The notes under the pieces are model-generated. The model saw only the letters and a list, made by a program, of their open reading frames with translations. It had not been told where the DNA came from and made no database searches. Below are positions 14,997 to 60,044 of a DNA stretch of 64,000 nucleotides, piece after piece. The DNA is from Chara braunii (lineage: Eukaryota > Plantae > Charophyceae). Within the stretch, counting starts at the first letter, position 1; each line of letters begins with the position of its first letter. Where the stretch lies: the NCBI GenBank assembly GCA_003427395.1, contig BFEA01000010.1, positions 2,894,235-2,958,234 on the forward strand. The letters are read 5' to 3'. The position numbers and the translations under genes were made by a program.

Positions 14997-15628
14997 TGCA
15001 ATAACCCATGCCATATGTCTCATGGAGCTGAGGGTCATTAGAGGGCCGACTTGACCGCCCTCAACCCAGGCCGAACAAGGGCAGAAAAGGCCCTTCACGA
15101 ATTCAGGGTCTGGGCATGTCAACTGTCGGTCCACCCAACGGTCAAAGTCCAAAGGTACCTAGCCCAGGCCACAGGTCAAGAACACACACTTGTTTGTATG
15201 CAGGTACCCAGATCGCATCAGGTCCAAGGCAGAAGTTCGTAATTGTACAATCCGGGCCTTCAACTGTGAGTCAATCTGCACAACTGAAGGGAAAAGCACC
15301 GAGGCCAGACAACCTCGCTTATTGCTACTTAAGGCTGGCCTCGAGAGAGTCAAGGCATCCAGTCTTGCTATGCTGCTTTGACGTTGGCTTCATGCTGGCT
15401 GTGCACAAGCGTTGCGGACGACGGCACGAGGTGGAGGCAGCATGCCGGCACTTCTTCAGTGCGTCATGCCATGCTGATGTGGCGCTGCCTCTGGTCTACG
15501 TGGCATGCTGATGTGGCGCTGCCTTTGGTATATCTGGCGCTGCCTCTGGTCTACGTGGCATGTTGATGTGGCGCTGCCTCTGGTATGTGTGGCGATGCTA
15601 TGGAATACGTGGCATACTGATGTAGCGT
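14997..15628 (+). repeat. element A 3' LTR, left fragment
   Basis: repeat of 7357 to ~8023; broken by element B. Confidence 0.93.
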
Positions 15629-16829: not shown

Positions 16830-16905
<76 letters not shown>

Positions 16906-17250
16906 CGAGTCGCTCCGCCCTTCCTTCTTCCTCTCTCTCCCTTTCTTCGACTTATACGTAGTCCCCTCTGTCCGTCCTCCCTTGATTTCGGGCAGCGTCG
17001 CCAGCCGACGCCCCTCCTTACCTTAGCTCGAGCCTTCGAACTCCGGGGGTCCGTCGCCTGTCGGAACGCGGAGGTTTGCCCCTCGCTCCTCTTCTGGGGA
17101 GATGGTCGTTCACTTGCTCGTGCACTGTCCAGTGTCCCTTGTGCGCTGTCCAGTGTCCCTTGTGCGCCTCTCTCTCTCAGTCGGCCCAGCCGCTACCTGT
17201 GATCGTTCTTCGGAGCCATACCCCCCCCCCTTCACGACGCGAGTACTTGA

Positions 17251-17287
<37 letters not shown>

Positions 17288-18666
17288 ATGCTCGTTGATG
17301 CGGAGACACGAACGCCTTCTCCCACCTGCTCGCGGTTTCACTCCCTATCTCACGCGATGGTGGCCCTAGCGTTCTGCCCCTCCCTCTCTCTCTCCCTCAC
17401 TCTCCCTCTAATACGCTGGCCGAGCTCGTCTGCGGCGCATACGTCCTCGTGCGCCTCTCCCTCTTCCTCGTAGTTTGTTCTCCCGCCTCGCGCGTCGACT
17501 GCCCGTAAGTGAGCACTTTACGCCTTCCTATCTCCCTCCCTCACTCTCTCTAGTGCGCTGATCGCACGCGGCCGCGGCCGCGAGTCCTCGAGCGCCCCGA
17601 ACGCACGCGCGTTCCGTTCGATTTTCTCTCTCCCCCTCCCCCTCTTTTCCCTCTTCCTTATATGCCGGTTGCTTCCCCGAGTTCTCTTCTTCCCGATCCT
17701 CGTCCTCACGTTACGCCCCCGCCTGTCGGCGCTATTCTCCAAATTTCTGAATTTTTCGCTCTTTCCCGCCATATTCTTCTCTTCCCACCTCGCAATCCAT
17801 CGCCTGTCTATTCTAGCCAATAGCAGCTCGTGTCCACTCCTCTCCTTGGATTTCCACCACGCGAGGCCGCGCAGGAAGGACTCGCGATCGCGCGTTCCAG
17901 TTCCCGCCGCTTGCCTCGTCTCCATCGACGGACTCACACACTAACAGCTCCCCCTCTCTTGCGGCTGACAGTTATCAAGAACCCGTCTCGCGCTCTTTCC
18001 CGGGGTAACCGTTTATGCGAAGTCTCCTTCCCCCTTCCCGCGTTCGTATTCTTGTTCTTTCCCACATTCTTCTCCCCCTCCCTCTGTGTGTTATCTCGCC
18101 ATCCCATCGCCAGTTAAGCCTGGCACTTGGTCGGCTTCGCCACCTACCCCCTTTTTCCTCATTATGCAGCCTGCGGCCCGTCCCTATCTGGAGCAACGAA
18201 GTCGATAACCCTTCTCCCTGAGGCGCCCTCCGCCAACCCAACATCCTTGGATTTCACACCTTTCGTATATGGCGGTCCCTCAACCGGCTCAATTGCCTCC
18301 CCGCGTTCCGTCAGGACAACCCCGCAGCTGCATGCAGCCAAAATAAGTGGGCCCATCTCCGCACCCAGTTTCTTCTCGGTTTCCCCCTTGATCTTATGTC
18401 GGCCGCCTTCCCCCCTATTCTTCTCACGCCACGCCGGACTCCCATATTTTAGTCTGCTTCCGACATCGTTTACGACCTTGCGTTGATTGTCTTCATCACT
18501 GCTTGCTTAACGTTAGTGGAAGTCAAAAGGAACCCCAAGGTTTCCCCAAACCCCTCAGGTCTCACGCATCCACGCATCCAGTCATGCAAGAACAAAAGAA
18601 ACATGTCCAAAAAAAAATTGAGTTTAGCAAGAAGAGCGTAATCGGCTGGTAGGCAGCCGCCCGACA
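15629..18666 (-). repeat. element B 3' LTR (~3.0 kb including a gap)
   Basis: direct repeat of 32343-35922 (about 94-95% identical in a 110-nt sample); contains ~65-bp tandem units and (CT)n tracts. Confidence 0.95.
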
Positions 18667-18681
18667 ACCAGCCCACACCCC
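18667..18681 (-). promoter_or_regulatory. polypurine-tract position of element B
   Basis: G-rich GGGGTGTGGGCTGGT immediately before the 3' LTR TG. Confidence 0.6.
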
Positions 18682-19002
18682 GAATCTCGTCGTCCCCGAT
18701 GAGTGCCTCAGTAGCCCCTTTTCCCAACCCTTCTCTTATACCCCGTGCTCCCTTTTCCTTTCCCCAGGCACACTTGTCTTTCTTTCCCATCTTCACGGTT
18801 TTTTTCATCACCGCCTTTATCGGATTACGTTCCCCCTGCTTTCCCCCACCCTACCCCGAAACTATGATACCCGTCTTAACTTGACGGTTTTTAGACGGCA
18901 TTGCATAATTATGGTACAGTCCCCCCTTAGTTTTCCTTCTTTGGAATTATGATACATGTTTTTCCTAGCTATGGTACAGTTCCTCTTTTCCCTTAAGGAA
19001 TT

Positions 19003-19329: not shown

Positions 19330-22300
19330 AGGGGTCCCCCTCGATCGGAAAGTTTGAGGCGAGCCCCCGTGATAGGGTCTCGTAACCTGGTCCCGTCTAA
19401 TTCGACAGGGAGATACGCTCCCCTATCCAATCTTTTTAGGACGGTACGGCCCCATCCACCGGTTGGCTAGCTTCCGGCTCCACGTCTTCTCTAGCGACGA
19501 GTCGTACATCAGGACGAGGTCACTAGTCCCTATCGGCTTTTGTCGGACCCGCAAATTCTTGTCCCACCTTTCCTTTCCTTTCGTCCTCTCTTTCTCGATG
19601 TTTCTCCCCGCCTCGGTAAGTCCGGAGTCTAGGTTTTCGGCTATTTGTCGTATCCTCGCCTCTAACAACTCCCCCCTTGTCATGTTGGTCTTCCACGTGA
19701 CACTTGTCGACGTGGAATTTGATGGGCAGGGGGCAGTGCCTACCGAACCAAAGGGCGTAGGGGGGATACCCCGTACTTGATTTGACTGTGATGTTGTCGG
19801 CCCAAACCGCATAGCGCAAATACTTTGGCCATTGTTCCTCACGCCCCTTGCACCACTTGGCTAAGGCATCTACAAGCGTCTGGTGACCTCTTTCGACTGG
19901 GGCGTTGCTTTGGGGGTGATATGCGGTTGTGTAGGCCGCCCTAATCCCTGCCTTTTCTAATATCGCTTTGACCTTTTGGCTTGAGAACTCGGACCCCCTT
20001 ATCCATGACTATCTTCCCGACACACCCGTACCTGGCGATGTATTCTAGGAGAAAGTCACTCACCTCCTCGGCCGTCTTCCTCTTAATGGCCTTAGCTTCT
20101 ACGAATCCAGCGAGGTCATCGCGGGCATTGATTATGTACCAAAGTCCACCGACTCCCTTGGGCATGGTCACCAAGTCCACATGGATCTTCTCGCCCGGCA
20201 CTGTGGGGAGCGATGGAACTAGGGGTTCATTATAGCGAACAATCGCCCTCTTTTGGCAAGCTTCACAGGTCGAACAATATTTTTCCACCTCCCCGTATTG
20301 TCCGTCCCACCAGTAAAGTCGTAGAACCTTATCAAACGTCCCTTTTACCCCCCGGTGACCGCCGACGACCCCATCGTGTAATTCTTCTATGACTGCCTTC
20401 TTTTCTTCCGGGTCGCAAAGGACCCTCATGGGAATTGCGAACTTCGTGGGCCTCTTAAAGAGGTGGCCTCCTCGTAAGGATTACCCGAGTGCCTCCCTTT
20501 TGACTACTTCGGTGCCTTCTTCCCGACCCGCCAGGTATAATCCTATATCTCGATATTTCCCGTTGTGAAGGTTAGCGAGGACCATCCTAGGGCCTTCGCC
20601 TTCTCCTCGGATGGTCACCGCTACTTGCGCTTTGTTAGCGGCGACTTGGATCATCTCGGCCTTGGACATTGCTAGCCTAGCTTCCTCTAATCGGGGATAA
20701 TCCTCTTCTCTGATTGGGAATCGGGACAACCCGTCGGCGACCTGATTTTTGGCCCCAGAGATCCTCTTGACTCTAAAATAGTAGAGCCTAATGTGGATCA
20801 TCCACCTAGCGATAGTCGGGTCGGTTAGCGAGAAGTCCTTTTGAAGGACAGCTGCCACCGCGGTTGGGTCCACTCTTAGGAGGAACCGCCTCCCGTAGAT
20901 GTAGTGGCGGAAGGTCTTTAGGCAGTGCAACACCCCTAGCACCTCTTTCTTGAATTGGTTGTAGTTCCTCTCGGCGGGATTTAAGGCTCGACTCTCAAAA
21001 CGCAGGGGTCTTTCTTTCCCGTCTCCATCCCTTTGCGACTGAAGCCCCCCTATGGAGTATGGCCCCGCATCTATAGATACTATAAACAGGCGGTTCTCCT
21101 CGTCCTCGAAGAACAGAACGCCTAGGACTTGCCCCCCCTCTCGGAATTCGTCCTTAAGGGTTTCCATGGCCGCGGCCTGCTCTTCTCCCCAGACCCATCC
21201 TTCAACTTTCCTAAGCAGCCGCCTTAGTGGCTCCGCCTTCTCGTTGTAGCCTTCTATAAAGATCCTCCAGTAGCCTACCACCCCTAAAAACTGCCTAACC
21301 TCCGTGATGGACTTTAGCGACGACGGCCAGGTCATCAATTTTTCTATTTTTTCAGGATCGGGCCTCCGTCCATCCTTGTCACAGATGAAGCCCAATATCT
21401 TGATTGACGATACTCCCCATCGACTCTTCGCTCCACTTACCGTGATGGACTTTACCGGCGACGACCAGGTCATCAATTTTTCGAATTTCTCGGGATCGGG
21501 CCTCCGCCCATCCTTGTCGCATATGAAGCCCAATATCTTGATTGACGATAATCGCCAGTGACTCTTCGTTCCACTTACAGTAAGGTTGGCGTCATCTAAT
21601 TTCGTGAGGACCTCCCTTACATCTACCATGTGATCCACCACAAACTTCCTTACTCCGGGGAAGACCTCCATCTCATCTTTTTGGACTGACCCTTTTATCG
21701 GGAAGTCGTCAAGGAAGACCTCTACCTTATCCGATATGAATTCCTTGAGGACTGCGATCATGGCTCTTTGGAATACCACCACCCTGTTTGTCCATCCCAT
21801 AGGCACTACCATCATTTGAACCAGCCCTAGAGGCGTGTGCATCGCTGTCATGTGTCTATCACATTAGTCTAAGGGGATTTCGTCATAGCCCGAGAAGAAG
21901 TCGCAGATCGAGTAAATCGAGCGACCCGCCGATCCTTCTGCGAGTAAATCCGCCTCAGGTATAGACCCCACATCTCATATGGTGACTGCATTGGTCTTTT
22001 GGAGATTTTGGATCCACCTCAATTTGTTGCTATCCCCTTTCCTCAGAAAGAACCATTTGTTGGAATAGACACTCTCACAAGGCTCCGCGACAAACGTCCT
22101 TATCTTCTCTTTGATGAAGGCCACTATCTCTTCCTTCTCTTTTTGCACATACTTCCACGGTGGTCTATCTTTCCAAGGAACGTGAGGGACCGTATGGATC
22201 CAGGCGGGCTTAGCGTACCTTGGGTCTATCCTTTCTCTTTCCGAATCATCGAAGGCTATGGCCTTATCGCAATCCCTTAGGGTCATAGCCACATATCCCT

Positions 22301-23773
22301 TCTCTTGTTTCGTTAGGTTTCCATCCCCTATGTTCATTTTTGCTAGCCTATCAGCTGTAATTCTTTGCCCTTCGGTCTCCTTCCGCTTCCGGATAATATC
22401 GGTTATCTCCTCCTCCGATATCGAAGCTTCCCCCATTCTATCCCGACTGACCGCGGCGGGTTTCACTTTTTCCGCTACGGTTTTATGCTTCTTACCTCTG
22501 CCAGCTAGAGGGATTCCCCGCAAAAAGACAGCCTTATGCACCCGCCGAATTCCTCGTCTTCATCCTCCTTTTCATATCCGACCCCATCGATGATTATCCC
22601 GTCGCCAATCTCCTCGACTTCTACCCGTTCCCCTGGGGGTTCCTTCTCGGCGAAGGGGGACTCTTCTAGTCAGACCCGACAAACTCGTGACTGGGCTTCT
22701 CTCCTCCTTGGCACACTCGTGCGATTCCTCTCATCTTGAGCATCCACCGTCCTTAGGACCACTCGAATTTCATCCAGATTTTGGATCGAGAGGGTCTGGC
22801 TTCCGTCTGGAAGATCGACCGTAGTAGCATGGACCACGCTTAGCCAAGTTCGCCCGAGGATCAACTCGGAGGAACATTCTTTCACTGAGAATATTGGGAT
22901 GGTCGCTTCTACGCCAACGACCTCGATCATAGGGTTGTGACACACCCCTTCCACTGGTTGGAGCTTGTTGTCCGCAACTACCATGGACATCGACACTCCT
23001 CTATCGACTTCTAACCCTAACTCCCTTGCAATGAAGTCTCGACATACGGTAGATTCGAACCCATTGTCCACTAGGGCTCTCATTTTTTTTCCACTCACCA
23101 CGGCTTGGAGTTGGCCGCTCCCTAATACATAGAATTTCTTGACCTCTTCCTCCGAGAAGAAACTCATCGGCAGTTCTTCCATCGCGATCCGAGAGGACTG
23201 CACCTCTTCCTTGGCGGGTCCATCCCCAGGAACGGTTGACCCTTCTGCGAGCAGAATTCTCACCTTCTTAGTGATGCACAGGAGCTCGTCTCTAGCACTC
23301 TTGCTTGCTGCTAAGTATTCAAGAAGAGTGCATTGCATTGGCTGCATTAGAGTCCTCCGTAGGGGTGCAATCGTATCTATCTCGTCCAAGGTGCACTTCA
23401 TCTTGAACTTCTTTGGTCCTTTCTTTCTAGGTGATTTAGGCGACGTGGGCTCTTCCCCGTTCCTCTCCTCCACGACTTTGGCGTCGACCATCGGTTGGTC
23501 GTCGTCACCACTCCTCCCTCCATCTACCGTTGCAATTTCCTTGCTCTTAGACGGCCCGGCCCCAACTTGGGTCCTTACTCTTAGGCACGGTCCCTCTTCT
23601 TCAGGCTTGGTCTCAACGAATTTGATGCTAGACACCTGCGGCTCCCTTATGGACACGCCTCCTGGAGCCTCCGTCATTTGGACGCGGGAGGAGCTGGAGG
23701 TCCCACCGACCTCAGGCTTCTTTCCCAGTCTTGCCTCTCGTAGGGCAACCCTTTTGTCCACATTTATATTCAT
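19330..23773 (-). pseudogene. element B pol: aspartic protease, RT, RNase H, integrase; stops and frameshifts
   Basis: ALVDNG..LILGRTW (protease); LRWIQNLQKTNAVTI, PMGWTN, FLDDF (RT); IDAGPYSIGG, VADGLSR (RH); HDGVVGGHRG..CEACQ, IHVDLV (INT); no chromodomain seen. Confidence 0.93.
21303..21578 (-). repeat. in-frame 138-bp (46-aa) tandem duplication in RT
   Basis: two copies of TVSGxKSxWxxSSIKILGFICDKDGRRPDPEKxEKLMTW; 15 differences in 138 nt by manual count. Confidence 0.95.
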
Positions 23774-23779
23774 CGAGGG

Positions 23780-25547
23780 TTAGACGGAGACCGCTTCTCC
23801 ATCATCCCCCCATACGACCCACTTATTTTCATTTAACTTCACCACCCCTAACCTTAGGGCCTCTGTGAGGTGAGGACACTCCCGCTTCACATGATTATCT
23901 TCATTGCAATAGACACACCCGCTTTGAGGCGGCGGATTGTTAAAGCGAGGGGCCACTTGAGGTGCCACCCCCATAGTCGTTGAAGGACCGGGTGGCTGCG
24001 AAGCTCTAGCCTGACTTACCTCGGGACGAGTCCCCGTGGCTCTAGGTTGCGGAGGGTCTCCCCACCTCCCATCTCTAGCATCTTTCCAATGGGAATTCCC
24101 CCAGTCAGATCCTCGATTGCCCCCAACTTCCCGGTCATTTCTCCAATTCCCTTGGTTTCCGGACTCGTTCCGCCAACTTGCGGGCCCCCCTCCCCAGTGT
24201 TGGCAGGGAGGCCCAGGTGGCGGCCTATCGTTCCCGCGAGGACCATCGTTCCGTTGGATACGCATGCTTCGGAGTGCCATGTTCAGACTCTCCTTCATAT
24301 ACTCCCGTACGTCGACTCCCCCCCCCCCGTAAAGACCACTTCAGCGACTCTTTCGAAATTTGTCGAGTCTCTAGGGGCCCTCTCGAGAACCTCTTTCCTC
24401 TTCTCTTCCGGCAGGTGCAGCATAAACATTACATACCTATCCACTTCCGAGAGCATCCCCCTATCCACCAAAGCTTGCGACAAGCGTTTTAACCATTAAG
24501 CGAAGGCTACCAGGCTTTCTTGTTCTCCTCTTGAGACCGGCGCAACCCTTCTAACGTAGGGATCAAGTCGTCGCAGGCGAAGGTCCGCAACAAGCTGCTC
24601 TTGAAGGTCTTCCACCTCCCATCCACCGGGTATATTGCCCTAATGGCCTGGTTTAGTTCAAGATCCGAATGTTGTATAAAATGGTTGATCCATTCCTTCT
24701 TCGATAATTTCTTCCGGAAGGCGTAGCTTTCCCATTTCTCGACGAACCCGATCACGTCCCTCCCGTTAAAGTAGAGCGTCTCAAGTCCTAGGTTCACATC
24801 GTAGTAGGGGACTCGTCGGTCGTCATACCGACAGAAGTAGGGACCTTCCGTCGGCCCAACTATCACTGGGTCATAGGGTTTGTACCAAGCGGGGTCTAGA
24901 TCCTCCATCCATGGCCGAGCCCTCGGAGGTCCCCACAGTTCCTCCTCACGGCGGCCTCTCTCACACGGGTCCTTTTGCTCCCAGCGTTTAGGTTCTTGGA
25001 CTCTAAACCCTCTCCAGGCATCTCCAAGTCCTCTCGCACTCCTCCTCGTCATCTCTTTCGGCGCCCATGCAGGGTCTATCTCTCGCCCGACCCACCTCCG
25101 TGGTCCTCCCAACGTCTCCACAGGTCGCTCCTCCCCCAACTCTCTCCTTCTTAAGCTCCCTTTTTCACCCCTCTTGGGCGCCCAACTCCCCAACCTTTCA
25201 CGCGAAAAATCTTGGCCTTCTCCGGTCCTTTCTCCCATATCTACTCGATCTGCCCATCGGGTCTCGACAGGGAAGCCCGTAGAGGTTTCCATTGCCCTTT
25301 CTCTAGCGGATACCCGCGGCTCGACCTCCCTATTCGGACACACCTCGATGCTCGCTCTCTCTCCTACAGCAGATTTTCTCTCGCCGAGAGAAGGTTCCAG
25401 GCTTCTCTCAGCCCTACCTATCTCCTCCATTCTTTCGGTTGTCTCCTCGGTCACCTCACTTAATCTAGCCCCTAAAACGACATCTTTCTCGATCTGTCCC
25501 ATGGTCTCAGGTGGTCTAGAAATCCCGGGCTCCACTTCACTCTCCAT
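23780..25547 (-). pseudogene. element B gag (capsid plus CCHC knuckle), frameshifted
   Basis: FNGRDVIGFVEKWESY..WKTFKSSLL capsid-like block; CVYCNEDNHVKREC knuckle; directly upstream of and in frame with the protease ORF. Confidence 0.85.
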
Positions 25548-25565: not shown

Positions 25566-26771
25566 TTAGTTGCTTCCCTCACTAGTGTCACTCCCTTGCC
25601 CTTCCGCTTCGCCTCTTTCTTTTGAGCTCTCTTCCCCCTCACTTGATTCTTGTTCCTCACTATCACCCTCGGATTCTTCACTAGTCATGGTCCACCAAGA
25701 GTCGCGTACTCGTTTCTCTTTGCAAGCAGCTAACGCGAGGTTGGCAATCTCTAGATCGAAAATGCCCCTAATCAATTCTTGAGAACACCTTTTAATCAGA
25801 GCTCTATCCACCTCTTCGGCTTGCCCTTTAAACAGAGGCTTAATGAACTCCCCTACTAATGCCCACCACTCGAAGTCCGTATGCTCCCACGACTCCCAAC
25901 ACTGGGTGAATAACTCGTGTCCCTTCTCCTCTCCTAGGGGAAATTTTTCAATGACTTGTCCTCTATGCAGGACCTTCCTCACGGCTGCGTCGTCGGGGTA
26001 GAGCAACCGGTACGCCCAAGCCGGAATTTCCCAGGTCCGGTCGTGAGCCGCCCTAGGGACCTCTAGCCTCCCTCGGTACTCAACCCTATCTACCACGCGT
26101 CCTTCGGCGGCACCCCCTCTCAACCCCCTAAGCCGGTCTAGGGCTTTTCGGGCGATACCTAGAGGGTCCTTTCCTTCTGCTAACTCGGTCGCAAAGAACT
26201 GCCTATCGTCGTGAGACAATTTCAGCCCTTCACGTGCGGGTACCTCCCTCAAAAACTATCGAAAAACGAACTATCGTTTCCTGCCCGTAGATCTCGAAGA
26301 ACTCCGTAATAACCTCTCCTACCTCCCTATTCTTGGGGAGGGTTACTCTATACCTAGCCCCCGACTTCCAATCCCTCTCCAAGGTCCCGACAGGGCTTCC
26401 CCTGTCGTATCTCCCGTCCTATCCCAGAAACGGGCCTCAACAAGGTGCAACCTGGCTTTGAAGGGAGACCCGAGCCACCTAGAGTCCTCAAACTTTGTCT
26501 CGACCTCAAGCAAGGGTTCTCTCCAAGTCCTAGAGAACCGTACTTCCCCCGCCTTACTAACAAAAACCGAAAACTTCGCTTACGCGCTCCAGGATCTCCT
26601 CTTCCACAAAGCTAACCGTCGGATCTCGACAAGGAACTCCTTAGCTCGAGCCTCCTGGTTCTCTCCGAGACCCGGGCTAAGTTCCGCCCCCCTTTCTACC
26701 TCGACCTCGGGGCCGTCATCCCGCGTCTCTAATTCCCAGGCTATTGAGTCAGAGGCGAAGGTAGCTCTCAT
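25566..26771 (-). pseudogene. accessory paralog P5 (unknown domain plus acidic tail); 2 stops and 1 frameshift
   Basis: ATG 26771; LKLSHDDRQFFATELAEGKDPLGIARKALDRL aligns with P4 ILLSKEGFLEVVRSLKLGEDPLLYARAVQDRL; EVPRA and LFTQC motifs. Confidence 0.7.
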
Positions 26772-26773
26772 GC

Positions 26774-27710
26774 CTATCTTCCTCCCGAGAGCAGCTCCTC
26801 CTTCAATTCGTCGAAGATCTCAACTGTGGTGGTCTCAAGTTATTTGATCTTGCACAAAGATCTTGGCCTTGCCCTTCTCTCCTCTTCCCAGCAAAGGGTC
26901 AGGATTCTATACACTTCTGCCCTCACCCTCTCTAGTCCCACTAGTTCTCTGGTGTCAGGCTCCCTCATGCCTCAGGTTCCTTTGCCAACACGCAATTGCG
27001 ATCCGAATTAGATCCGAGGGGTCCCATCCTTCTAACCCCGCCTCACAGATCTCCCCCAAGTACCTCCACGAAATGGTCGATGCCCTTACGTGTTGGCCCC
27101 AGCCTTCAAAGGCGTAGCCCAGGTCCTCTAGTGACGACCCATTGTCTTGGTACGGATTTCGAAGGCACCACGATAACAGGGCGTGCAGGTCTGATCCCGT
27201 GAACCGAAATTGGTTCAAGATCAAGATCCTACGCTCTATTGCCCTCTTGACCGCTTCGGAGGGGTAGACCCACTCAAGGATGAAACGAGGGACTCCTACG
27301 GGGTCACTGGCGACAAATAGCGGTACCTCTTCCCAACCCTCGTACGTCACTTGATATATCCTTTGGTACCTCTCTCTAGCACTCACCTCCTCCACTAGTC
27401 TCTCTAGACGGTCTTGTACCGCTCGCGCGTATAAGAGCGGGTCTTCCCCCAACTTCAAACTCCGGACTACCTCTAGGAAACCCTCCTTCGAAAGGAGTAT
27501 CTTGGCTTCCCCAATCACCAACCCCTCCTCGCTACTCACTGACAACCGAATGAACGCCTTCCCTCGGCGGATTTCGGACACTTCCCTTCGAATGGTTCTC
27601 GTCGGACCCTCCAGGCTCGTCTTTGGTAATGTGATGTGGACANCCNCCCCCGCCTCTTCTACAGGCTCTATCGAGGCCCAAAGAGTTCCGAAAATTCCCC
27701 TTATCATCAC
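26774..27710 (-). pseudogene. accessory paralog P4 (unknown domain plus helical tail); 1 frameshift and 1 stop
   Basis: 251-aa ORF 26955-27710; tail in another frame ends LLSGGR-TAG 2 nt before the P5 ATG. Confidence 0.7.
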
Positions 27711-27737
27711 CTCGTCCGAGCCTCGTACCCCCTCCGG

Positions 27738-28468
27738 TTAGTCTTGCTCTTCCCCAAAGGGGCGGGCATATGGGACATCAACAACGTGAGCTCTCACCCC
27801 CTCAAACTCCCTTAACCTTTCGAATATAGGTGCTAGCTCTCTCCTAGGGGGAGCCCCAGCGTCGACACACCGAGTGTAGAGCCAAAATAGCCCTTGCGTC
27901 CGCACCCCGAATTGTTGCGGGCTTCGGAGTATTTCTAACACTCTCCCTTCCGGATCCTGTAGGAGCGATCGCACCAGGAATTCGGGCAAGGCAGCGTGGA
28001 GCACCCTGGAAGCTCGAGGGACTTCGCCTGGCTCGGCGAAGGACACCTGCGTCCACGACTTGAAAGTCCCTTCTTCGTAACTGCTTAGTGCCAGATCGTT
28101 CGCTACCTTCCTTGCGAGCTCAAGGTACTCCGTATGAGTCTCTAAACCGGTCACTAAACCCTTCCAAATTTCGGTCCACGAACCTTCGTCGAGGAATACC
28201 GTAGCCTGAAACTCTAGGAACCGTCCACGGTGAGGCGGACCTCCCCTCTGCACCCCTTCCTTCCAGGTGAGTCGACGAGCTCGAACCCACGCGTAAGCAC
28301 CTTCTCTGATGTTCTCTCCTTCTCAACACTCGACCAGTAGGGAGTTACGCGAGGGTGGTTGCACTGGGAGCCAGTGCTTGTTATATCACCAGGGATCAAG
28401 AACTGGCCTCTGTCACCGACCTCTATCGTTTTTACCACTCCGTTTTCACTGAGCGCAAACCTTACCAT
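27738..28468 (-). pseudogene. accessory paralog P3 (unknown domain); 1 frameshift near 28325
   Basis: MVRFALSENG..YWSSVEK / GENIREGAYAWV..QATVFLDEGSWTE..GEVPRAS..GLFWLYTRCVD. Confidence 0.75.
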
Positions 28469-29132
28469 CTACCGACGTTGTTTTGAAGACCCACTCGCGG
28501 TACTTCTCAGGTGAGAAGGCGACAGACTTTTCCAGAGACCCAAGTCTCCTAAAAATACCCCAGAGTTTCCTTCGCTAAGGGATTCCCTGGTCGATACAAT
28601 GAGTGTACAGTACCCACAGAGCCCTAAATGGTAGGCCTAAACTTCTTCCTCCCTCCAAGAGTCTTACTACCCTATCCTCGTCTGTGCTCAAGAACACAAA
28701 GCCCGGGGCCCTTATGATTACCAGATAACTCGCCCTCGGGAGCTCACCTGCCCGAGCGAACCTTTCCACCTCTATCGCCACAAAGCTAAATCCCCTCCGG
28801 GTCCTAATTATCCACCTTCTCCTCACTGCTCTTACTTCTTGGATCAATAGGTCCAGCCCACCCCCTTGGCCTAAGACCAGGGGTACTGCAACCTTTGCCC
28901 AAGCGCCCGGCTCGACGAAGATTATCACAGTGACTTTGAGATGCACCTCAGTCGCTCCATCCCTTACTTCTTCCGACTCTATCCACACGAAATTCCCGCC
29001 GACCGTGATTTCTCCACCTTCCAACCTCCTCCAATCGGGGACTGCCCCGTTGCTCGGAACCAAGCTATGAACCCCTCGCTCGTCTAAGGGGGATTCGACA
29101 AACTTACCGAGGTCCTTGTCAAAAAGAATCAT
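28446..29132 (-). pseudogene. accessory paralog P2 (unknown domain); 1 internal stop at 28575
   Basis: VTVIIFVEPGAWAK..GELPRAS..LGLPFRALWVLYTHCID; frame stays open past the TAG and stays similar to P3 (RRKLWGIFRRL vs RRELAPIFERL). Confidence 0.75.
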
Positions 29133-29137
29133 TCATG

Positions 29138-29879
29138 CTAACCTACCTTTTGGCGGACTCCAAATACACTTCGATAAGGGTAGCCTCTTCCGCCTTCACG
29201 GTCTCGCTCCGATTCCAGAGAGATCCTTTCTCGGATCCGATCGGCCCTGACTCTGTATGGCACTGGGTTGTCCACACAATAGGAGTAGAACCAATGAAGC
29301 GAACGAAAGGACAACCCTCTCCTTTTCTCCCGCCTTATAGACCACGACCTTCTCGTACTCGGCCCTCTCTCCACACACTCTCCTGAAGACGTAAGCCGGA
29401 AATATGGCTTCGACGCAACCCGTAGCATGAGGGTATTCCTCGTCCCGAGCACAAGTCACTCGCAAACGGAACGGCAGGTTGTGCCGAAGGCGTACCTCCT
29501 CGAAGATCTGTTTAAGAATAGGCCCCACGCGTACCTCCCAATGGTCCGCCCGATACCACCCCAATGCCCAGTGGGTGACGTACTCTACCCAGGCCTCCTG
29601 ACTCAAGTAGATCGTGCCCTCAGCACGAACCGCCGCTCGTCGAGCCTTTCCCCCGTTCGCAGGTCTACTCTTGGTCCACTGATCTCCTTCCCAAATATCT
29701 ACAGCAAATCGCGCCCAGAGAAAAAATCCCTTTTCGAGTTCTAGGCCTCTCTCGCGTCCGACTAAATATCTCTCCGTACAATGGTCTAAAGGGACGCTGA
29801 AGCACTCCCTCTCCTTGTCGAGGTCGGCCTTTTCGATTTGGACCCTACCGTCGCCAGTCGCCTCTACAATCCTGACCAT
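29138..29879 (-). pseudogene. accessory paralog P1 (unknown domain); 1 frameshift
   Basis: MVRIVEATGDG..KGFFLWA..EGTIYLSQEAWVE..EYPHATG, then in the second frame GLSFRSLHWFYSYCVD. Confidence 0.75.
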
Positions 29880-30573
29880 GGACCACCTCCTCGATGATTC
29901 CTACTAACACCTTCCAACCGTCCGACCCGTCGAGATAGGCCTCTGGCATAGTCGGGGTGGGTCGCTCTCCTTGTCGGAAGGTCCGGTAACCCAATGTGTA
30001 GAAGTACCGGATCCCGTAATTTCCTAAAAGTTCCCTTTCTAGCTGAGCGTAGCTAACAACCTCTTCCCAGCTACTGAGGAAGTCTTCCCCTCGATCCGAA
30101 CCTTCCTCTACATAGAGCGCTATATCAAAATCCCCGGTCCATAGATAAAAGTTGTAACACCATACGTCTATATCCCCACAACTACCCACGCTAATGCCCG
30201 TCGGCTCAGACTCCAAAACTCCTAGGCTCCCCACTATCTCCTCTATGATCGCGACCAATACTCTCCACCCGTCCGACCCGTAGAGATAGGCGTCCGGAAT
30301 CACTGGCGTAGGTCGACCGCCCCTAGGATAAGTCCGGTACCCGAGAGAGTAGAAGTATCGAAACCCGTATCCTCGCAGCTCCCCTCTTTCCATACGAGAG
30401 TGGTCGGCCGCCTCCTCCCATCCGCGAAGGAAATTTTCCCCCTGATCTTGCCCTTCCTCTACATAGATGGCAATGTCGAAATCTCCCGTCCACAGACGAA
30501 AGGTGTAGCACCACACGTCGACTCCACCGTGACTACTCACACTAATCCCTTCCGAGACCGCCTCTAAGCTCAT
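29845..30573 (-). CDS. accessory ORF0, intact 242-aa protein made of two ~117-aa repeats; function unknown
   Basis: DVWCYxFxLWTGDFDIAxYVEEG..YGxRYFYxLGYRT..PTPxxPxAYLxGSDGWxVLVxIIEExV occurs twice with mostly conservative substitutions. Confidence 0.8.
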   Translation of the reverse strand: MSLEAVSEGISVSSHGGVDVWCYTFRLWTGDFDIAIYVEEGQDQGENFLRGWEEAADHSRMERGELRGYGFRYFYSLGYRTYPRGGRPTPVIPDAYLYGSDGWRVLVAIIEEIVGSLGVLESEPTGISVGSCGDIDVWCYNFYLWTGDFDIALYVEEGSDRGEDFLSSWEEVVSYAQLERELLGNYGIRYFYTLGYRTFRQGERPTPTMPEAYLDGSDGWKVLVGIIEEVVHGQDCRGDWRR

Positions 30574-32320
30574 ACATCCTACTCAAAGAAGGTCCTTTTT
30601 GTCACCCTAACTTTAGGTCACTCGAGAGACCAGCCCTACCCTGCAAGGAGAAGGTGCCTGTGAGCTCAGCAGGATCAAATGGACCAGAGAAGGAACGCCG
30701 TCTCACTCGGCTACCTTCTTGTCCTCCCCTGCTGAGAGGTCCTCCCACTTCCATGTATAGAAACTAGCCGCGAACACAGGTTATCCCCGAAGAGGGGTGC
30801 CAACCCCCTCTCCGTAGTTGGACCGTAGTCACACACTCGTGCCCTACGTCCCCCACCGAACCGACCCCTAGTCCTAAGTTAGCCTATCCGGCACCACGCC
30901 CCTACTCGGCCCCCCTCGAGCGTGGAATTACCCGGGTTCCAGGACTTTATCCGCCTATCGATCAATGATCACTAGCCTGTCAACTCCCTCCCATTCTTCT
31001 CCTTATATCATGAACTCTTCTCACTTCGTTCCCTTCTTCCTATTCGCCTCCGTCGAACTCTTTTCTCTCTCGGAATCGGAGAATTTAATCGAGGTCTTCA
31101 CACAAAAGGGTGGGGAATTAGAACTTTAGAAAGAGAGTCTCTCAAGTTTGGCCACTTTAAATACGTACCTTGTAGTCTTCGACCTTTTTAGAATTCGTTC
31201 TCGTAGTCCTAGTAGTCCCCGAGATCCGAGTCCGAGAAATCGGCTAGACACCGGTCCACCCAAGAGTCGGCCTCCGATTCGTCGTCCAAGGTGCCCCACA
31301 TATCTCTCCTCTCTTCTTCTCGAATTAGCCCCCTACCCCCTCCGTTCTCAACGGCGGCTGGAGTTCCCTCGACCCTTTGCCCCGGAACCCGAAGCACTAC
31401 CCTTCTCGCTCCCGAGTCCCGAACAGCACCCGTTTGAGAATTTCGCTCCCTCGAGGGAGTCGTGTCCCGCGCGAGTCCCGTCCACAATCCGCGTGGGTCG
31501 AGAACAGAGAACCCTGCCCCCTCTCGAGAAGCCTGTTCGCCCGCGGGAATTTCGTCCCGTGCGGGTGACGTCCACAACCCGTGTGGGTCGAGGATATTTG
31601 GCAAGCCTCTCTCCCTTTGGACCAACCCTCTTGGATCCCAAACAGATGGCGTCCAAGGACCCTCTCGAACCGCCCTTTCCTCTCTTCCCCAAGCGTTCAC
31701 TCTCTCTTCCCCACGTGCGGACCCACTCACACAATTTCCCCGCACGACTCTTCTTCCCCCCCTTAGATTGTTTTTCACCCTCATTCAAGCCCCACAAGCA
31801 AACTGTTTCACCCTCTTAATTTGAGAATTTTGTTTTTTTTTTGAAATAAACACACATAAAAATTATCACACTACCCAGCAAGAGTCTGACCTGGATTTTT
31901 GGAAGGAGCAAGTGGGGCCGAAGTCGCAAGTGGGGCCGGCGCGGACCTGCAAAACCAAGAGAACCGAACACCCCAAGCCCCTCGCACCCAAGCAACCCAG
32001 TAACCCCTTCCACACGGAAAACAAGACCTCAGACAAACACACGCCCCGACGCTGCCTGAAGCCACCCAAAAGGCACCGGGGACCTTGGAATGCCAAAAAA
32101 AAAGGTCGATGCCGAAATACCGTCGAAATAATCGATGCCGAAAACGAAACGGCCGTAGAAACTGATGCCGATATAATGCCGTCGAAACATTTGACGCCTA
32201 AACGAACTTGTCGAAGAAACTGATGCCGATACCAAAAAAAATGCACCCTCCACCACCTGTCAGGCTCGTCCTCCCTCACACCGCGGTCCTTGAGCCAACC
32301 GAGACCGCGGGAGAATGCTC

Positions 32321-32339
32321 ATCCCCGGCAACGGCGCCA
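32321..32339 (-). promoter_or_regulatory. primer binding site complementary to plant tRNA-Asp
   Basis: Minus strand TGGCGCCGTTGCCGGGGAT, 3 nt from the 5' LTR; same PBS type as Athila-like elements. Confidence 0.9.
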
Positions 32340-32342
32340 CTT

Positions 32343-33060
32343 TGTCAGCAAGCTCCCTCCTTCGATCACCACCAGTTGCTGCTGGTCCGACTGCTGGTAG
32401 TTCGGGGGGGCGCTCCCTTTTAGCGACGCCTCCCGTGACGGCAGCTGCCTGTCTTCCTTCTGGTCTCTGGCAGCTTTCGGCCCTCTGGTTGTCTCCAAGG
32501 GAGCCCGTTCTCGGAGCGGTACTTGCTAAAAAACAGCTTTTCCCAGTGCACCCTGACAGAACTGCGATTCGCAAAAGAAGGAGACCCCGACCGAACTCGG
32601 TTTTCCGAAGAGACTGACAGAACTACGACCTTGCAAAAGAAAGTGGACCTGGACCGAAACCAGTTTTCCCAAGTGGGCTCAACAGAACTGCGAGTTCGCA
32701 AGAGAAGCAGGCCCAGACCAAGCTCAGTTTTCCCAAATGGACCGTAAGAGAACAACAGAACCGTGGTTTTTGCAAAAGAAGTGTACCCCGACCGGAAACA
32801 ATTTTTTTAAAATGGACCCTAAGAGAACAACAGAACTACGATTTCGCGAAAGAAGTGGACCGAACCGAAATCGGTTTTTCCAAATGGACCCGGAAGAGAA
32901 CAACAAAACTTAGATTTCATAAAAGCAGTAAGGGTCGCCAACAGCGTTTCGATCGGGACTCAGAAGTTCGTTGCGAACGTAACGCTTCCCCCCCACCGAG
33001 CCAGAAGCCCCGATATGCCTCCCTTCCCCGCCGTGAAGCCGATATCTTTCTCTCTCTCTC

Positions 33061-33139
<79 letters not shown>

Positions 33140-33499
33140 NNNNNNNNNNNNNNNNNNNNNNNNNNNNNNNNNNNNNNNNNNNNNNNNNNNNNNNNNNNNN
33201 NNNNNNNNNNNNNNNNNNNNNNNNNNNNNNNNNNNNNNNNNNNNNNNNNNNNNNNNNNNNNNNNNNNNNNNNNNNNNNNNNNNNNNNNNNNNNNNNNNNN
33301 NNNNNNNNNNNNNNNNNNNNNNNNNNNNNNNNNNNNNNNNNNNNNNNNNNNNNNNNNNNNNNNNNNNNNNNNNNNNNNNNNNNNNNNNNNNNNNNNNNNN
33401 NNNNNNNNNNNNNNNNNNNNNNNNNNNNNNNNNNNNNNNNNNNNNNNNNNNNNNNNNNNNNNNNNNNNNNNNNNNNNNNNNNNNNNNNNNNNNNNNNNN

Positions 33500-33583
<84 letters not shown>

Positions 33584-35922
33584 AGTCGCTCCGCCCTTCC
33601 TTCTTCCTCTCTCTCCCTTTCTTCGACTTATACCTAGTCCCCTCCGTCCGTCCTCCCTTGATTTCGGGCGGGGTCGCCAGCCGGCGCCCCTCCTTACCTG
33701 AGCTCGATCCTTCGAACTCCGGGGGTCCGTCGTCTGTCGGGACGCGGAGGTCTGCCCCTCGCTCCTCTTCTGGGGAGATGGTCGTTCACTTGCTGGTGCG
33801 CTGTCCAATGTCCCTTGTGCGCCTCTCTCTCTCAGTCGGCCCAGCCGCTACCTGCGATCGTTCTCCGGAGCCATACCCCCCCCCTTCACGACGCGAGTAC
33901 TCGATTCCTCTCTCTCTCTACATGCTCGTTGATGGCGGACGCGGAGACACGAACGCCTTCTCCCACCTGCTCGCGGTTTCACTCCCTATCTGCGCGATGG
34001 TGGCCCTAGCGTTCTGCCCCTCCCTCTCTCTCTCCCTCACTCTCCCTCTAATACACTGGCCAAGCTCGTCCACGGCGCGTAGGTCCTCGTGTGCCTCTCC
34101 CTCTTGCTCGTAGTTTGTTCTCCCGCCTCGTGCGTCGACCGCCCGTCAGTGAGCACTTTACGCCTTCCTATCTCCCTCGCTCACTCTCTCTAGTGCGCTG
34201 ATCGCACGCGTCTGCGGCCGCGAGTCCTCGAGCGCCCCGAACGCACGCGCGTTCCGTAGGATTTTTTCTCCCCCCCTCCCCCTCTTTTCCCTCTTCCTTA
34301 TATACCGGTTGCTTCCCCGAGTTCTCTCCTTCCCGATCCTCGTCCTCGCGTTACGCCCAGGCCTGTCGGCGCTATTCTACAAATTTCTGAATTTTTCGCT
34401 CTTTCCTGCCATATTCTTCTCTTCCCACCTCGCAATCCATCGCCTGTCTATTCTAGCCAATAGCAGTGCGTCTCCACTCCTCTCCTCGGATTTCCACCCC
34501 ACAAGGCCGCGCAGGAAGGACTCGCGATCGCGCGTCCCAGTTCCCGCCGCTTGCCCCGTCTCCGTCGGCGGACTCACACACTAACAGCTCCCCCTCTCTC
34601 GCGGCTGACAGTTATCATGAACCCGTCTCGCGCTCTTTCTTGGGGTAACCCTTTATTCGAAGTCTCCTTCCCCCCTCCCACGTTCGTATTCTTGTTTTCC
34701 CACATTCTTCTCCCCCTCCCTCTGTGTGTTATCTCGCCATCCCATCGCCAGTTAAGCCTGACACTTGGTCGGCTTCGCCACCTATCCCCCCTTTCCTCAT
34801 TATGCAGCCTGCTGTCGTCCCTAAATCTTTCTCCATTCGTCAAGGCGGCCTGGCCGATCGTTCTCTATCCCCTCCAACTCATCCTTTGGCCGATCCTTCC
34901 TTACGTTCGCTTCACCCAATGGCGACGCGAAGCTGCCCGCCTCTCGGATTCAGCTTCACCCAAGCGCTCAACCACCTCGCTCGTGGCCCACCTCTTCAGC
35001 CCAGCTTCAGCGTTCGTAACAGTTGACGAGCGCGCTCCTCCTCTCAACCGTCGTCTCTCCGTTTGCCGGGTCGATCTTCTCTTCCTCCCTCAGCCGTCAA
35101 TTCGCGCAGTCCCCTCCTTTCCTCATTCATTTTCCCTCCATACAAGGTTCTCAGCCGTTGAAGCTAGTATTCGACTAGCTCGATCATTCAGTCGGCCACC
35201 CCTCCCAACTCTGTCTTGCACATACACCCCGAGTCGTCGGGTCACATCGGTTACCCCGCTGCCTGCTCCAGAAGTTCTTTGACGGATCAAACCTACCCAC
35301 CGAGCGACGATGTTTGGGTCGGGGCTGGTCACGCAGCACTGTTTGGGCCAGCCCTAGTGTACCAAAGCCGACCCTAGAGTGGCAGCCATAACGACTTGTG
35401 TACAGTCAAGGGTGACTGCCTCGAGGCCTGCGGCCCGTCCCTATCTGGCGCAGCGAAGTCGATCACCCTTCTCCTTGAGGCGCCCTCCGCCAACCCAGCA
35501 TCCTTGGATTTCACACCTTTCGTATGTGGCGGTCCCTCGGCCGGCTCAATTGCCTCCCCACGTTCCGTCAGGACGACCCCGCAGCTGCGTGCAGCCAAAA
35601 TAAGCAGCCCATCTCCGCACCCAATTTCTTCTCGGTTTCCCCCTTGATCTTATGTCGGCCGCCTTCACCCCTATTCTTCTCGCGCCACGTCGGACTCCCA
35701 GATTTTAGTCTTTTTCTGGCACCGCTTACGACCTTGCGTTGATTGCCTTCATCCCTGCTTGCTTAACATTAGTGGAAGTCAAACGGAACCCCAAGGTTTC
35801 CCCAAACCCCTCAGGTCTCACGCATCAACGCATCCAGTCATGCAAAAACAAAAGGAACATGTCCAAAAAAAAATTGAGTTTAGCAAGAAGTGTGCGATCG
35901 GCTGGTAGGCAGCCGCCCGACA
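32343..35922 (-). repeat. element B 5' LTR (~3.6 kb including a gap)
   Basis: repeat of 15629-18666 plus 619 extra nt (34813-35431). Confidence 0.95.
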
Positions 35923-35926
35923 GCGC

Positions 35927-36363
35927 TGCTACTGGTCTACATTGTTGACGTGGCATTGTCCACGCTGTCTACATGAAGTGATTGGTTGCGAGGAGGAAGA
36001 TCGGGATTTGTGGTTGAGGGAGAACGAGTACTCACCTGGGTTTGATGTCAATACTGGAATCTGCAATGTCTTCATGGTCTTCATGATATTGAGTGCCACG
36101 TGGCACTTCCGTGTGTGATCAGGAATATACGTATTATCATTGTCGATGTGAAGAGGGGAGAAGCCCGGAGAAGGAGAGGGTCAACAGGGATTATTGTCTG
36201 ATTCTTCATCTTCTCCTTTGTTTGTTCCCCCTCCCCTTTCTTCTATTGATGATAATGAGATACGGTTTGATATATTTCTTCACGAATTGGAGACTTTGAT
36301 GCATATACCGACTCTACAAGTATTGGACGACTTCGGACTATCTGTAAGACCGGGTTCATTACA
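35927..36363 (+). repeat. element A 3' LTR, right fragment
   Basis: matches ~8025-8420 and ends gggttcattACA. Confidence 0.93.
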
Positions 36364-36367
36364 TTCG

Positions 36368-36882
36368 TTTCTCGTTGACCCACAAGTAGTTGAGTGGCAA
36401 AAATCAAGAATGAGACAAATCGGCACGACATTTATTTCACCGACTAAGCATTTTTTACAATTTAAAACATGTTTCGTGGAAAGATCACAACCAAATCTAC
36501 AGACTCTTCAATTTTCAAAGTTTTCAAGGCATTCTTCGGAGCGCGAAAAATCACAGAAGTTAGGGTACTCTTCCTTTTGGCCCACATGTTGGAGTGGCAA
36601 AAATGAAAAATGTGACAAATTTGTGCGGCATTTATTTCATGGTCTAAAAGCTTTTTTTTTTTTTTTTTTGATATTTTTTCCCGTAAAGATCACGACCTAA
36701 TCTACAGGATCTCGAATTTTCAGACTTTTTCACTTATTTTTCTGAGCGCGAAAAATCGCCCAAGTTGGTAAGTGAAAATTGCGGGACTGGACCCGCCTGC
36801 GCCACCCGGTCGGCAGCCCCCCTAAAGACCCACTCCAAACTCACCGGAATGCCACATTTTCGGTGGCAGGTAGAGTGGTGGT
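36368..36882. mobile_element. non-autonomous TIR DNA transposon, right part, with two more ~190-200 bp internal units
   Basis: ends GGTAGAGTGGTGGT then TTAA (36883-36886); units share caaaaat..ttatttca..aaagatcac..aatctac..gagcg.gaaaaatc with 7180-7350. Confidence 0.8.
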
Positions 36883-36886
36883 TTAA

Positions 36887-39290
36887 GTGCATCGGAGAGC
36901 ACGAGTTGTGTCTTAATACACTGCAACGTCTCATGGTCAAATCTCACATAAAAGAATCTACCTAGGACGTAGTGCCTCCAATAGACCAGCACTCTATAGA
37001 GGGCATAGAGCTCACACTCTTACGTGGCCTTACCTAATTTCTAAGATGGCATCTTTTTGCTCAATGTACTCGAACGACCTAAACTTTTTCCCCTTCTTTT
37101 GCACAAGAACCTCGCCTATGGTCACAACAAAGGGTTGTTCAGGATCCGGAACTTTTGAGGACTTCATAGTGCGTCAGGGAATACTTCAATCTCTTGAAGG
37201 GTGCCTCACACTCTTCGGTTCACTTCCATGGGGTGTCATGCAGAGTGAGGTCAGATAGAGGGGAGAATACAATACTATAATTCTTGACAAACGGGCGGTA
37301 GTAGCCTGTCATCCCCAAGAATGACCTCACCTCAGTCACAGACTGAGTTTTGGGCCAGTCACATATTCTGGCCACTTTTCTGTAAGGGGACGTACTTGGC
37401 CATATCCGGCCCTTCTCTATAAGCTCCTTGAGCTGGCGGCGGAGCTCATCTAACTTCGAAGGAGACATCCTATAGATCCTCCCTCTAGGCTACCGGGACG
37501 ACTTCTATCGCGTGTACAATCTCCCTTTCTACCATACCCCTAGGCTCTTCAAAGAGGTCTGAATATTGTGCAACGACTGCCTGCATCTCTGGGGGTGATT
37601 TTACGACCTCCCCTTTTTCAGAGACAAAGACTAGGTACATTCCTTCCTCGCGACTCTGCTTGTAGGAGTCATAGAAAAAATACGTGCACATGCAACCATA
37701 GTTCTCCACTAGTCTGCCAGCCTTGAACTTCTGCAGCCTAACGGTCCTTCCGCCTGACAACTTGTGGATCATCATCTTCCTATCCCATCAAATTGACGCT
37801 TAGCAACCTCGAGGTAGTACATGCCTAGCAACATGTCAAATCGCAGCTCGTCGCTCACCAAGAATAAGATTTCGTGTCTCGGTTCCCCTCCTCCATAGGA
37901 GAAGGTGCAGGCCGCGTCCTTGACATAATCCTTCACTATTATGGAGTGCTTGTTGGCTAAGGTAGATGCTACAGATCTGCTAAGCACTTGATCCCCTAGG
38001 CGCAGCCTATCCACACAAGCACGACTGATGAAGTTTCGTGAAGAACCTATACCTTTGAAGGCGCCAACCTTTCGACCAACTACATCGGCTTCTACCTCGA
38101 AGTGTTCACCGTTTGGACCTTTGTTCAACATCGCCCAGGAGTCTCTAGGGTCTTCTCAAAACATTCAGTCTCTAACTCCTCTAAGGACTCAGACACATCC
38201 ATCGAACAATGCATCGATTGGTCTGGATCTGTCTGCTAGGCGATCATGGGGTTAGTAGCCTTGGCCATCGTTTGAAATGGAGAAGGTAAGGTTACCACTT
38301 CAGCACGAGTAAGAGTTAACACTCCTACTTGCCCCCAGGTGTTTCCTTGCGAAGTGCTCGCAAAAGCACCACCTTAGTTGGTAGATTCAACCGTCACTAT
38401 CGAGGACGCGACCTTCCCAGCGACCTGCTTACTCTTGGACTCGGCCATTGTGTGCCCATAGGCCCCAATTTAGGCAAGCGCCTCGCACATTACGGTCTCG
38501 CCACGCGTCGTACTCCAGACCAAGCTTCACACATATGGGTGGCCGGCCTACCTTCTGCTTCCCGGCTTCCTTACCCTTTTCTCTAATGGGCGCGGCCACT
38601 CCACCATCTAAAGTTTCCCCAAGCCCATCTATCTCTATTTCTTCCCCAGGGTCATTGAACTCTTCAATCTCGTTTGACCATCATTGTCGATGAACAAAAG
38701 ATTGCCTTTCTTCCTCGCATCCGGAGGAAACTTCTTCTTCCTCCCATCAACCGGTCCTTGATGGGCACTCCCAAGCTTACCTCTATGTCTAGGGCTTTCT
38801 TGTTGAACGAGGTGAAGTTATGCATGTCTATGGAGGCCTCTGGGACCAACTTATTCTTGACATCTATAGGCAGACTTCGCAAATAAATTGTGAGGAGTAC
38901 CTGCGGTTCGTACCCCACACCTGGGACAACAATCAGTTGCTCTACGACGTCTGTTACGTCGCAAATTCTTCGGTACCTCTTCGATCCTAGACTAGCTAAT
39001 AAGTTTGTGTCTATGTCTAGGGCTTTCTTGTTGAACGAGGCGAAGTTATGCACGTCTATGGAGGCCTCTTCGACCAACTTTTTCTTGACATCCATAGGCA
39101 GACATCACAAATAAGTTGTGAGTAATTGCGGTTCGTACCCCACGCCAGGGACAACAATCAATCGCTCTACGACGTCTGTTACCTCGCAAATTGTCTGATA
39201 TCTCTTCAATCCTAGACTAGCTAGCGAGTTTGTGACCATCTGAGCTCCTTGAGGGTCATGCCACCTTTTCCGATTACGTACACCCTGCGT
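36887..39290 (-). mobile_element. element C, 5' half: gag fragment, protease, internally deleted RT, RNase H
   Basis: Removing 7088-36886 restores DHETLQCIKTQLVLSDAL-KRWIEVID; RT core missing (PSTSPY joined to KVARICDWPK near 37383); 228-bp gag duplication at 38782-39237. Confidence 0.88.
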
Positions 39291-59860: not shown

Positions 59861-60044
59861 ATTCGGTCACCACTGGAAAGCTAGGTCTGATCTGGCGGGG
59901 TCGGCGCATAAATGACGAACGCCGTCGACGTGGCAGAGAAGGCTGTCGGTAAGACAAAGAACCCCGCAGATCAGCATCAACACAACGTTGAGAGGAAGGG
60001 GGACTGAGAGGAGGAGAGAATGAAGCAACCTGCCGACCTCCAAA

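Follow-up and report, generated by a model that had tools for sequence, protein, structure and literature searches.

An AUG-poor cassette of ten open reading frames, including five diverged paralogs, in a Ty3/gypsy retrotransposon of Chara braunii

What is an array of five highly diverged copies of one protein domain doing in the genome of Chara braunii, and how might its genes be read? The array occupies 25566–29879 on the minus strand of a 64,000-nucleotide stretch of contig BFEA01000010.1 (assembly GCA_003427395.1, positions 2,894,235 to 2,958,234; the window hereafter), and its members, P1 to P5, had been taken in an initial annotation for a possible cluster of conflict effectors or the subunits of a heteromeric assembly. 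That first reading overlooked the retrotransposon context. The array lies inside a 20.3-kb Ty3/gypsy long terminal repeat (LTR) retrotransposon on the minus strand, between the element's primer-binding site (PBS) and gag, in a region that is markedly short of sense ATG triplets. Taken as a whole, the best explanation is on balance probably that P1–P5 are accessory genes within a cassette of ten open reading frames (ORFs) belonging to a Chara Ty3/gypsy family and carried on a scanned RNA.

The five paralogs do form one family. All three of the motifs (a, b and c) on which they had been grouped were recovered in place on the minus strand, and when each was scored with a hidden Markov model (HMM) of the other four, every one exceeded all shuffled sequences (P1 40.5, P2 39.3, P3 81.5, P4 41.2 and P5 14.5 bits; shuffle maxima 7–12). 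For the broken ORFs of the window we used read-through translations with an X placed at each break. Pairwise shuffling gave z scores of 25 for P2–P3, 12 for P1–P3, 9 for P4–P5 and 6 for both P1–P2 and P1–P4; P3–P4, and P5 with any of P1–P3, were not significant alone. Pairwise HHalign, using a profile for each paralog built from related element copies, connected P1–P2 (E = 2e-8), P1–P3 (6e-12), P2–P3 (6e-18), P1–P4 (9e-7) and P4–P5 (7e-12), and gave nothing significant for P5 with P1–P3. On these sequence comparisons P5 is the weakest link of the family, joined to the rest through P4. The description "five tandem paralogs" holds for the number but not strictly for the arrangement, with two unrelated ORFs, Y (62 amino acids, aa, in relatives) and X (158 aa in relatives), lying between P4 and P5. 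The extent first assigned to P5 (25566–26252) turned out to be only the C-terminal two thirds of a protein which reaches about 296 aa in intact relatives.

The element around the array is a Ty3/gypsy LTR retrotransposon, and its LTRs, PBS and ORFs lie on the minus strand. Its 5' LTR (32343–35922, approximately 3.6 kb) and 3' LTR (15628–18666) have TGT...ACA ends and are 91% identical, and it is flanked by a 4-bp target duplication (GCGT at 15624–15627 on the left, GCGC at 35923–35926 on the right), an unoccupied homologous insertion site being found near 8021. The PBS (32322–32339), which we take to be of the tRNA-Asp type, is three bases inside the LTR; among the homologous loci retrieved, the same motif is present in L003, L004 and L005, and a variant in L002. 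Beyond P5 comes a gag-like region (23780–25547) assigned by position, in which no Pfam match to a Gag capsid domain was found at 24510–25547 although the ORF is conserved, with a ratio of nonsynonymous to synonymous substitution (dN/dS) of 0.14. It is followed, in the order protease, reverse transcriptase (RT), RNase H (RH), integrase (INT), by an ORF ending in an aspartic protease (22670–23773; PF13650, PF13975), a broken RT and RH (20481–22541; PF00078, PF17917, PF17919) and a broken integrase (19400–20429, lower end approximate; PF17921). The tract before the 3' LTR (18667–18690, conserved at L002:20750–20773) is G/T-rich and interrupted, and is atypical as a polypurine tract. No confident match of P1–P5 to a known transposable-element domain was obtained, yet by position they are transposable-element genes.

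From the PBS towards gag the cassette reads U-P0a-P0b-P1-P2-P3-P4-Y-X-P5. ORF U (31209–31784; 181–191 aa) is unrelated to the P proteins and under weaker constraint. P0a and P0b (29845–30573) are two paralogs of about 120 aa, 55–64% identical, which make up a second family without known relatives; in the window they are fused into a single ORF, in other copies two ORFs meet at an AUGA stop–start, and P0b is duplicated once more in L008 (L008:5557–6303). By eye, P0 and ORF X resemble additional P paralogs, a relationship ruled out by HHalign and HMM comparison. The window copy is decayed. P1 (29138–29879, approximately 247 aa) has a frameshift near 29342, P2 (28446–29132, 228 aa) a premature stop at 28577–28575 and P3 (27738–28468, approximately 242 aa) a frameshift near 28320, while P4 (26955–27707, 250 aa) is open and contains two N bases. 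ORF Y (26774–26968), overlooked in the first reading, retains its start ATG in six of six copies and is interrupted in the window by a premature stop at 26842–26840. ORF X (26409–26771) has a stop at 26582–26580 and has lost its C-terminus, and P5 (25566–26412), which ends in an acidic tail, has a stop near 26231, a frameshift near 26218 and a start lost through a deletion of about 120 nucleotides (nt) near 26410.

The same order, from U through P5 to gag, is found in five other copies (L002–L005 and L008), the first four of which are 68–70% identical in DNA to the window element. Between copies, dN/dS (Nei–Gojobori, over pairs that are not independent and leaving out ORF Y) is 0.10–0.21 for P1–P5, 0.11–0.15 for X, 0.06–0.25 for P0 and 0.29–0.54 for U, with 0.06–0.14 for the gag core, protease and integrase as a comparison; these ratios are rough because, in comparisons with the window copy, synonymous sites are almost saturated. 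P0, P1–P5 and X are under purifying selection, and with paralogs about two substitutions per site apart the earlier idea of old duplications kept by selection is borne out. The idea of a fast-turning effector cluster of a host or a pathogen is not: gene number and order are fixed, orthology of the cassette genes is one-to-one, holding across copies with near-saturated synonymous sites, and no sign of birth-and-death was seen. A heteromeric assembly of P1–P5 is possible.

These data also bear on whether the cassette might be neutral cargo, or a family of host genes that the element has captured. Gene capture by LTR elements is known (PMC7264820), but no host homolog was found, and each fetched locus lies in an element or on a short contig with the same cassette. 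A profile search of 1.84 billion representatives returned eight named matches, all of them Chara braunii gene models, and two others, both of them short contigs on which this cassette is again present. Two further Chara proteins came from a second search. In these searches homologs were detected only in Chara braunii, and the only metagenome match has the accession prefix BFBZ01, as do L006 and L007. A single-sequence search with P4, an alignment search with P0, searches of viral contigs with P1 and with RT, and a search of phage records with P5 all gave no match. Looking up two of the window's ORFs by exact match returned no annotated gene. The proteins are, moreover, approximately 55–70% identical despite near-saturated synonymous sites, and the dN/dS values contradict neutral cargo, so that we regard this explanation as very improbable indeed. 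The Chara gene models containing the P domain (P0001–P0007, P0010 and P0012) are chimeras of neighbouring transposon pieces and carry UniRef names (RT, integrase, DUF659) that do not refer to this domain.

Across the 6.8 kb from the PBS to gag, sense ATG is depleted three- to fourfold (32–40 ATGs, or 0.26–0.33 of the base-composition expectation), and it returns to normal at gag, with an observed/expected ratio (o/e) of 1.0–1.2 in gag-pol. At the gag start codon of the window the density climbs from approximately 5 per kb to approximately 19, and in four copies from 0–6 per 500 nt before gag to 6–14 from gag onward. ATA, ATC and ATT are near expectation in the same 6.8 kb, and the array shows no shortage of antisense CAT. 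Of the 64 trimers, ATG is the most depleted in the leader and array, with an o/e of 0.39, or of 0.57 once dinucleotides are corrected for. Internal methionines number 2 in 1216 codons of the window P1–P5, compared with 39 in 1685 of the element's own gag-pol (p = 1.5e-7) and 33 in 1052 of Q1–Q4, homologous proteins of a second retrotransposon family (p = 1.6e-9). Since these homologs are normal in methionine, the depletion is a property of the RNA and not of the fold.

The ATGs that persist are consistent in kind. Those common to all six aligned copies are the ORF starts and a single other, which opens a 1-codon ORF; those private to one copy derive mostly from ACG or GTG, as decay would give; and 13 of 14 stray shared ATGs tested open ORFs of at most 8 codons (background 38%, p = 4e-4). 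No start from P0a through gag has A at −3, the position being mostly a pyrimidine. Junction spacing is conserved (−4, −8, +4, −23, −4, +7/8 and +19 nt) and most ORFs abut, the P4–X gap being occupied by ORF Y and U lying about 600 nt from P0a. A weaker sign comes from the window 5' LTR, where the depletion sets in near a TATA-like box (near 34304, approximately 1960 nt before the LTR end), beyond which sense ATGs are scarce. G-rich, Shine–Dalgarno-like stretches before the starts (p = 0.013 on non-independent copies) were taken as composition.

This pattern points, quite likely, to a polycistronic genomic RNA driven from the LTR and read by leaky scanning with some reinitiation. Ribosomes would leak past the weak starts across AUG-poor ORFs, helped at abutting junctions by stop–start reinitiation, such that a share initiates at each ORF and the rest arrive at gag. 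The depletion runs through P5, the last accessory ORF, and this suggests that ribosomes scan to gag rather than the RNA being spliced. Alternatively, each ORF and gag might have its own spliced or subgenomic RNA, or be reached by pure termination–reinitiation, AUG loss being secondary. The AUGA and the short overlaps suit reinitiation, most copies have an AG 5–6 nt ahead of the gag ATG, the second family shows no AUG depletion, and a precedent exists in CERV of the C. elegans element Cer1, an accessory protein which promotes its own element and is made from a spliced mRNA (PMC10309623). Neither scheme, however, needs methionine to be lost in frame in every ORF including P5; the depletion stops at gag, there are no pyrimidine-rich acceptors before the starts, and the calicivirus-type UGGGA motif is absent within 90 nt of them. 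We therefore judge both schemes improbable beside scanning.

The second family (L001 and L009) carries four P-domain paralogs, Q1–Q4, before gag (L001:10001–13424; L009:8162–11692), with spacers of approximately 35–120 nt that are longer than those of the P cassette, and its RT is 51% identical to that of the first. No LTR pair was found within the fetched L001 and L009 DNA. In the tree each array position forms its own clade, and P2+P3, P4+P5 and Q1–Q4 are grouped with support (100/98 for Q1–Q4), the deepest joins, between long branches, being unsure. Q1–Q4 form a clade of their own and hence the Q array expanded separately. Long tandem-repeat arrays, with units of about 172 nt and 53 nt, lie upstream (L001:816–3254; L009:1490–5154).

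Turning to the proteins themselves, P1–P5 and Q1–Q4 have no match in Pfam, PHROGs or PDB sequences. An AlphaFold2 model from 36 sequences has a mean predicted confidence (pLDDT) of 56, most of residues 41–150 reaching 70–88, and this confident part consists of a long three-strand meander, two helices and one more strand. Foldseek comparison of both models with the PDB and viral folds gave nothing at E ≤ 0.001. Weak matches to PUR-alpha (E 0.6, target TM score 0.44) and PC4, a lead towards the PC4/PUR/Whirly single-strand binders with their fold of beta-meander plus helix, came from a poor P4 model (pLDDT 42), and PUR-alpha is missing from the matches of the better model. For the model listed as m66609205914b, the weak, non-significant matches include two uncharacterised arthropod-associated virus proteins (probability 0.47 and 0.18; E 0.14 and 0.53) and levivirus-like proteins. 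A BTB/POZ domain was discarded, as Pfam gave no match and the confidently modelled region, with its beta-meander, two helices and single strand, is not the mainly helical core of such a domain. Just four positions (in P1, Pro30, Leu104, Gly107 and Pro161) are the same in every one of the nine paralogs, and the best-kept polar residues are Glu148 (7 of 9) and Arg151 (6 of 9). No paralog has a membrane anchor, the only core hydrophobic stretch being in P2. Lacking shared catalytic residues and a membrane anchor, the paralogs are unlikely to have an enzyme activity in common or to play the part of Env; Env-like ORFs, moreover, sit 3', and these genes are 5'. More probably the domain serves for interaction or for binding nucleic acid.

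Our tentative proposal, which we hold at somewhat less than even chances, makes the P proteins soluble interaction modules of alpha/beta type, without enzyme activity, whose target is the RNA or particle of the element itself, as with CERV and Cer1 (PMC10309623). Their amounts would stand in fixed proportion to Gag; they would work separately, in a role apiece, or together as a hetero-oligomer, and could act on export, packaging or transport in the manner of retroviral Rev-like or badnavirus ORF I/II proteins. A more far-reaching version, which we think doubtful, is a eukaryotic operon in which one RNA yields eleven products in graded amounts, five of them forming a complex of new fold with a virus-like function such as RNA transport, cell-to-cell spread or a shield against silencing.

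The main rival accepts the same anatomy and translation, and has the P proteins countering host silencing, whether in the manner of VANC or by suppressing RNA silencing, with each paralog directed at one host factor or element sequence and the array growing in an arms race. The two independent expansions would fit, as would paralogs much more diverged than pol (compare the RTs of the two families) and methylation-type decay in the copies (ACG to ATG). VANC of VANDAL transposons, derived from MAIN-like proteins, promotes its own element, and for the accessory proteins of transposable elements numerous contacts with the host are predicted (PMC13547354). Strong purifying selection, fixed order and the lack of turnover speak against an arms race, no zinc-finger match was found, and no member has a Pfam match to the plant mobile domain (PMD) or MAIN-like proteins. 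CERV and VANC, which supply our two functional models, are single genes where P1–P5 form an array, and library scans detected no similarity of P to either. We consider this rival rather unlikely. Less likely still are a selfish toxin–antidote or killer module and a cell-to-cell movement apparatus, for both of which a multi-gene set of soluble proteins in fixed order would be suitable. Pararetrovirus genomes carry movement and transmission genes, and the layout of the cassette resembles theirs. The paralogs have no catalytic residues in common and no membrane anchor, however, and no toxin, movement-protein or Env match was found in Pfam, PHROGs, PDB or viral folds, making such roles a distinctly long shot.

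Several observations weigh against the cassette as we read it. The transcription and translation of its genes are deduced here from sequence, and the counts pooled over related copies are not independent. Scanning past ten starts over 7–9 kb would far exceed the 900 nt shown for rice tungro bacilliform virus (RTBV), and in most copies P1 starts in a strong context, with G both at −3 and at +4. In the second family the same domain goes with ordinary methionine content and longer spacers, and therefore what the protein does can be done without the scanning design. The isoelectric points of the P proteins range from 4.5 to 9.5, and nucleic-acid binding has no sequence or fold match in its favour.

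Other observations concern the element and its surroundings. A 140-nt tandem duplication inside RT (21302–21581) is not seen in L002, L004 or L005. In relatives (L002:13749–14330) the N-terminal part of the gag ORF is rich in Arg and Glu and repeats internally; the window copy is about 300 nt shorter there (25223–25507). The LTRs contain short tandem repeats of approximately 60–127 nt and (CT)n runs with assembly gaps (15822–16193, 32530–32929), and in both families the stretch from integrase to the 3' end contains charged low-complexity frames (L001:20757–21365; window approximately 19400–18900). The element sits inside an older plus-strand Ty3/gypsy element (7357–36363), whose 3' LTR it splits into 14997–15627 and about 35923–36363. 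The other LTR of the older element is at 7357–8420 (LTRs 85–87% identical), with protease near 11507 and RH-INT near 13032. Further decayed retroelement regions in both orientations, some with RT, RNase H or integrase matches, are at 36882–38236, 43007–44026, 49091–50975, 53241–57547 and 59523–61716.

Extra ORFs at the 5' end of plant elements usually number one. Among plant Ty3/gypsy elements a forward 5' extra ORF is present in 21% of Ogre, 23% of TatII and 33% of Tekay (PMC6317226, supplement 5). Like these, the Chara element is large, with long LTRs and family-conserved extra coding sequence in sense orientation between PBS and gag; unlike them, it has ten ORFs with tandem paralogs. Nor do its proteins give a Pfam match to PMD, Transposase_28, ATHILA ORF-1 or SMC, as catalogued plant extra ORFs do, and in contrast to Tat/Ogre no additional (archaeal-type) RNase H was found, there being only RT_RNaseH and about 80 aa between RH and INT. 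With Athila it shares a PBS of the tRNA-Asp type, as we presume that of the Chara element to be. Athila differs in having a 5-bp target duplication and 3' extra ORFs, against 4 bp and a 5' cassette (PMC6317226). A 4-bp NCGN target is shared with Phygy, a non-chromovirus of Physcomitrella, at both of two sites (GCGC and CCGT, with one transition in one copy each), but Phygy is short, with a tRNA-Trp PBS and no extra ORFs, and the Chara element is 20.3 kb with ten (PMC6317226). Combining a Phygy-like target with an Athila-like PBS, the element fits neither lineage.

A close parallel in layout is viral. RTBV and badnaviruses use leaky scanning over ORFs I and II, about 900 nt (PMC5902531), and they share with the Chara cassette accessory ORFs that lack internal AUGs, have weak starts and abut before a capsid-protease-RT gene, and a tolerance of short stray ORFs. 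The cassette differs in having ten ORFs over 6.8 kb as opposed to two over 900 nt, with no sequence relation found between the proteins, and the element, unlike Caulimoviridae, has an LTR pair and integrase. A cassette of several AUG-depleted ORFs ahead of gag was not found described in the literature searched, which did not include the Chara genome paper or most subscription journals, and a new protein family in a virus-like polycistronic retrotransposon cassette is apparently undescribed.

Extra ORFs are common in plant LTR retrotransposons, and their function and expression are largely unknown (PMC7264820). The Chara family shows how many such ORFs an element can carry and offers an answer, readable from sequence, on how they may be translated. 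If confirmed, it would take leaky scanning from the two ORFs known so far up to about ten, and would provide a natural multi-gene design on one eukaryotic mRNA. The P family, with no detectable relatives and two independent expansions, comes with a built-in control in the second family, which lacks AUG depletion, and AUG depletion itself offers a simple screen for like cassettes in other genomes.

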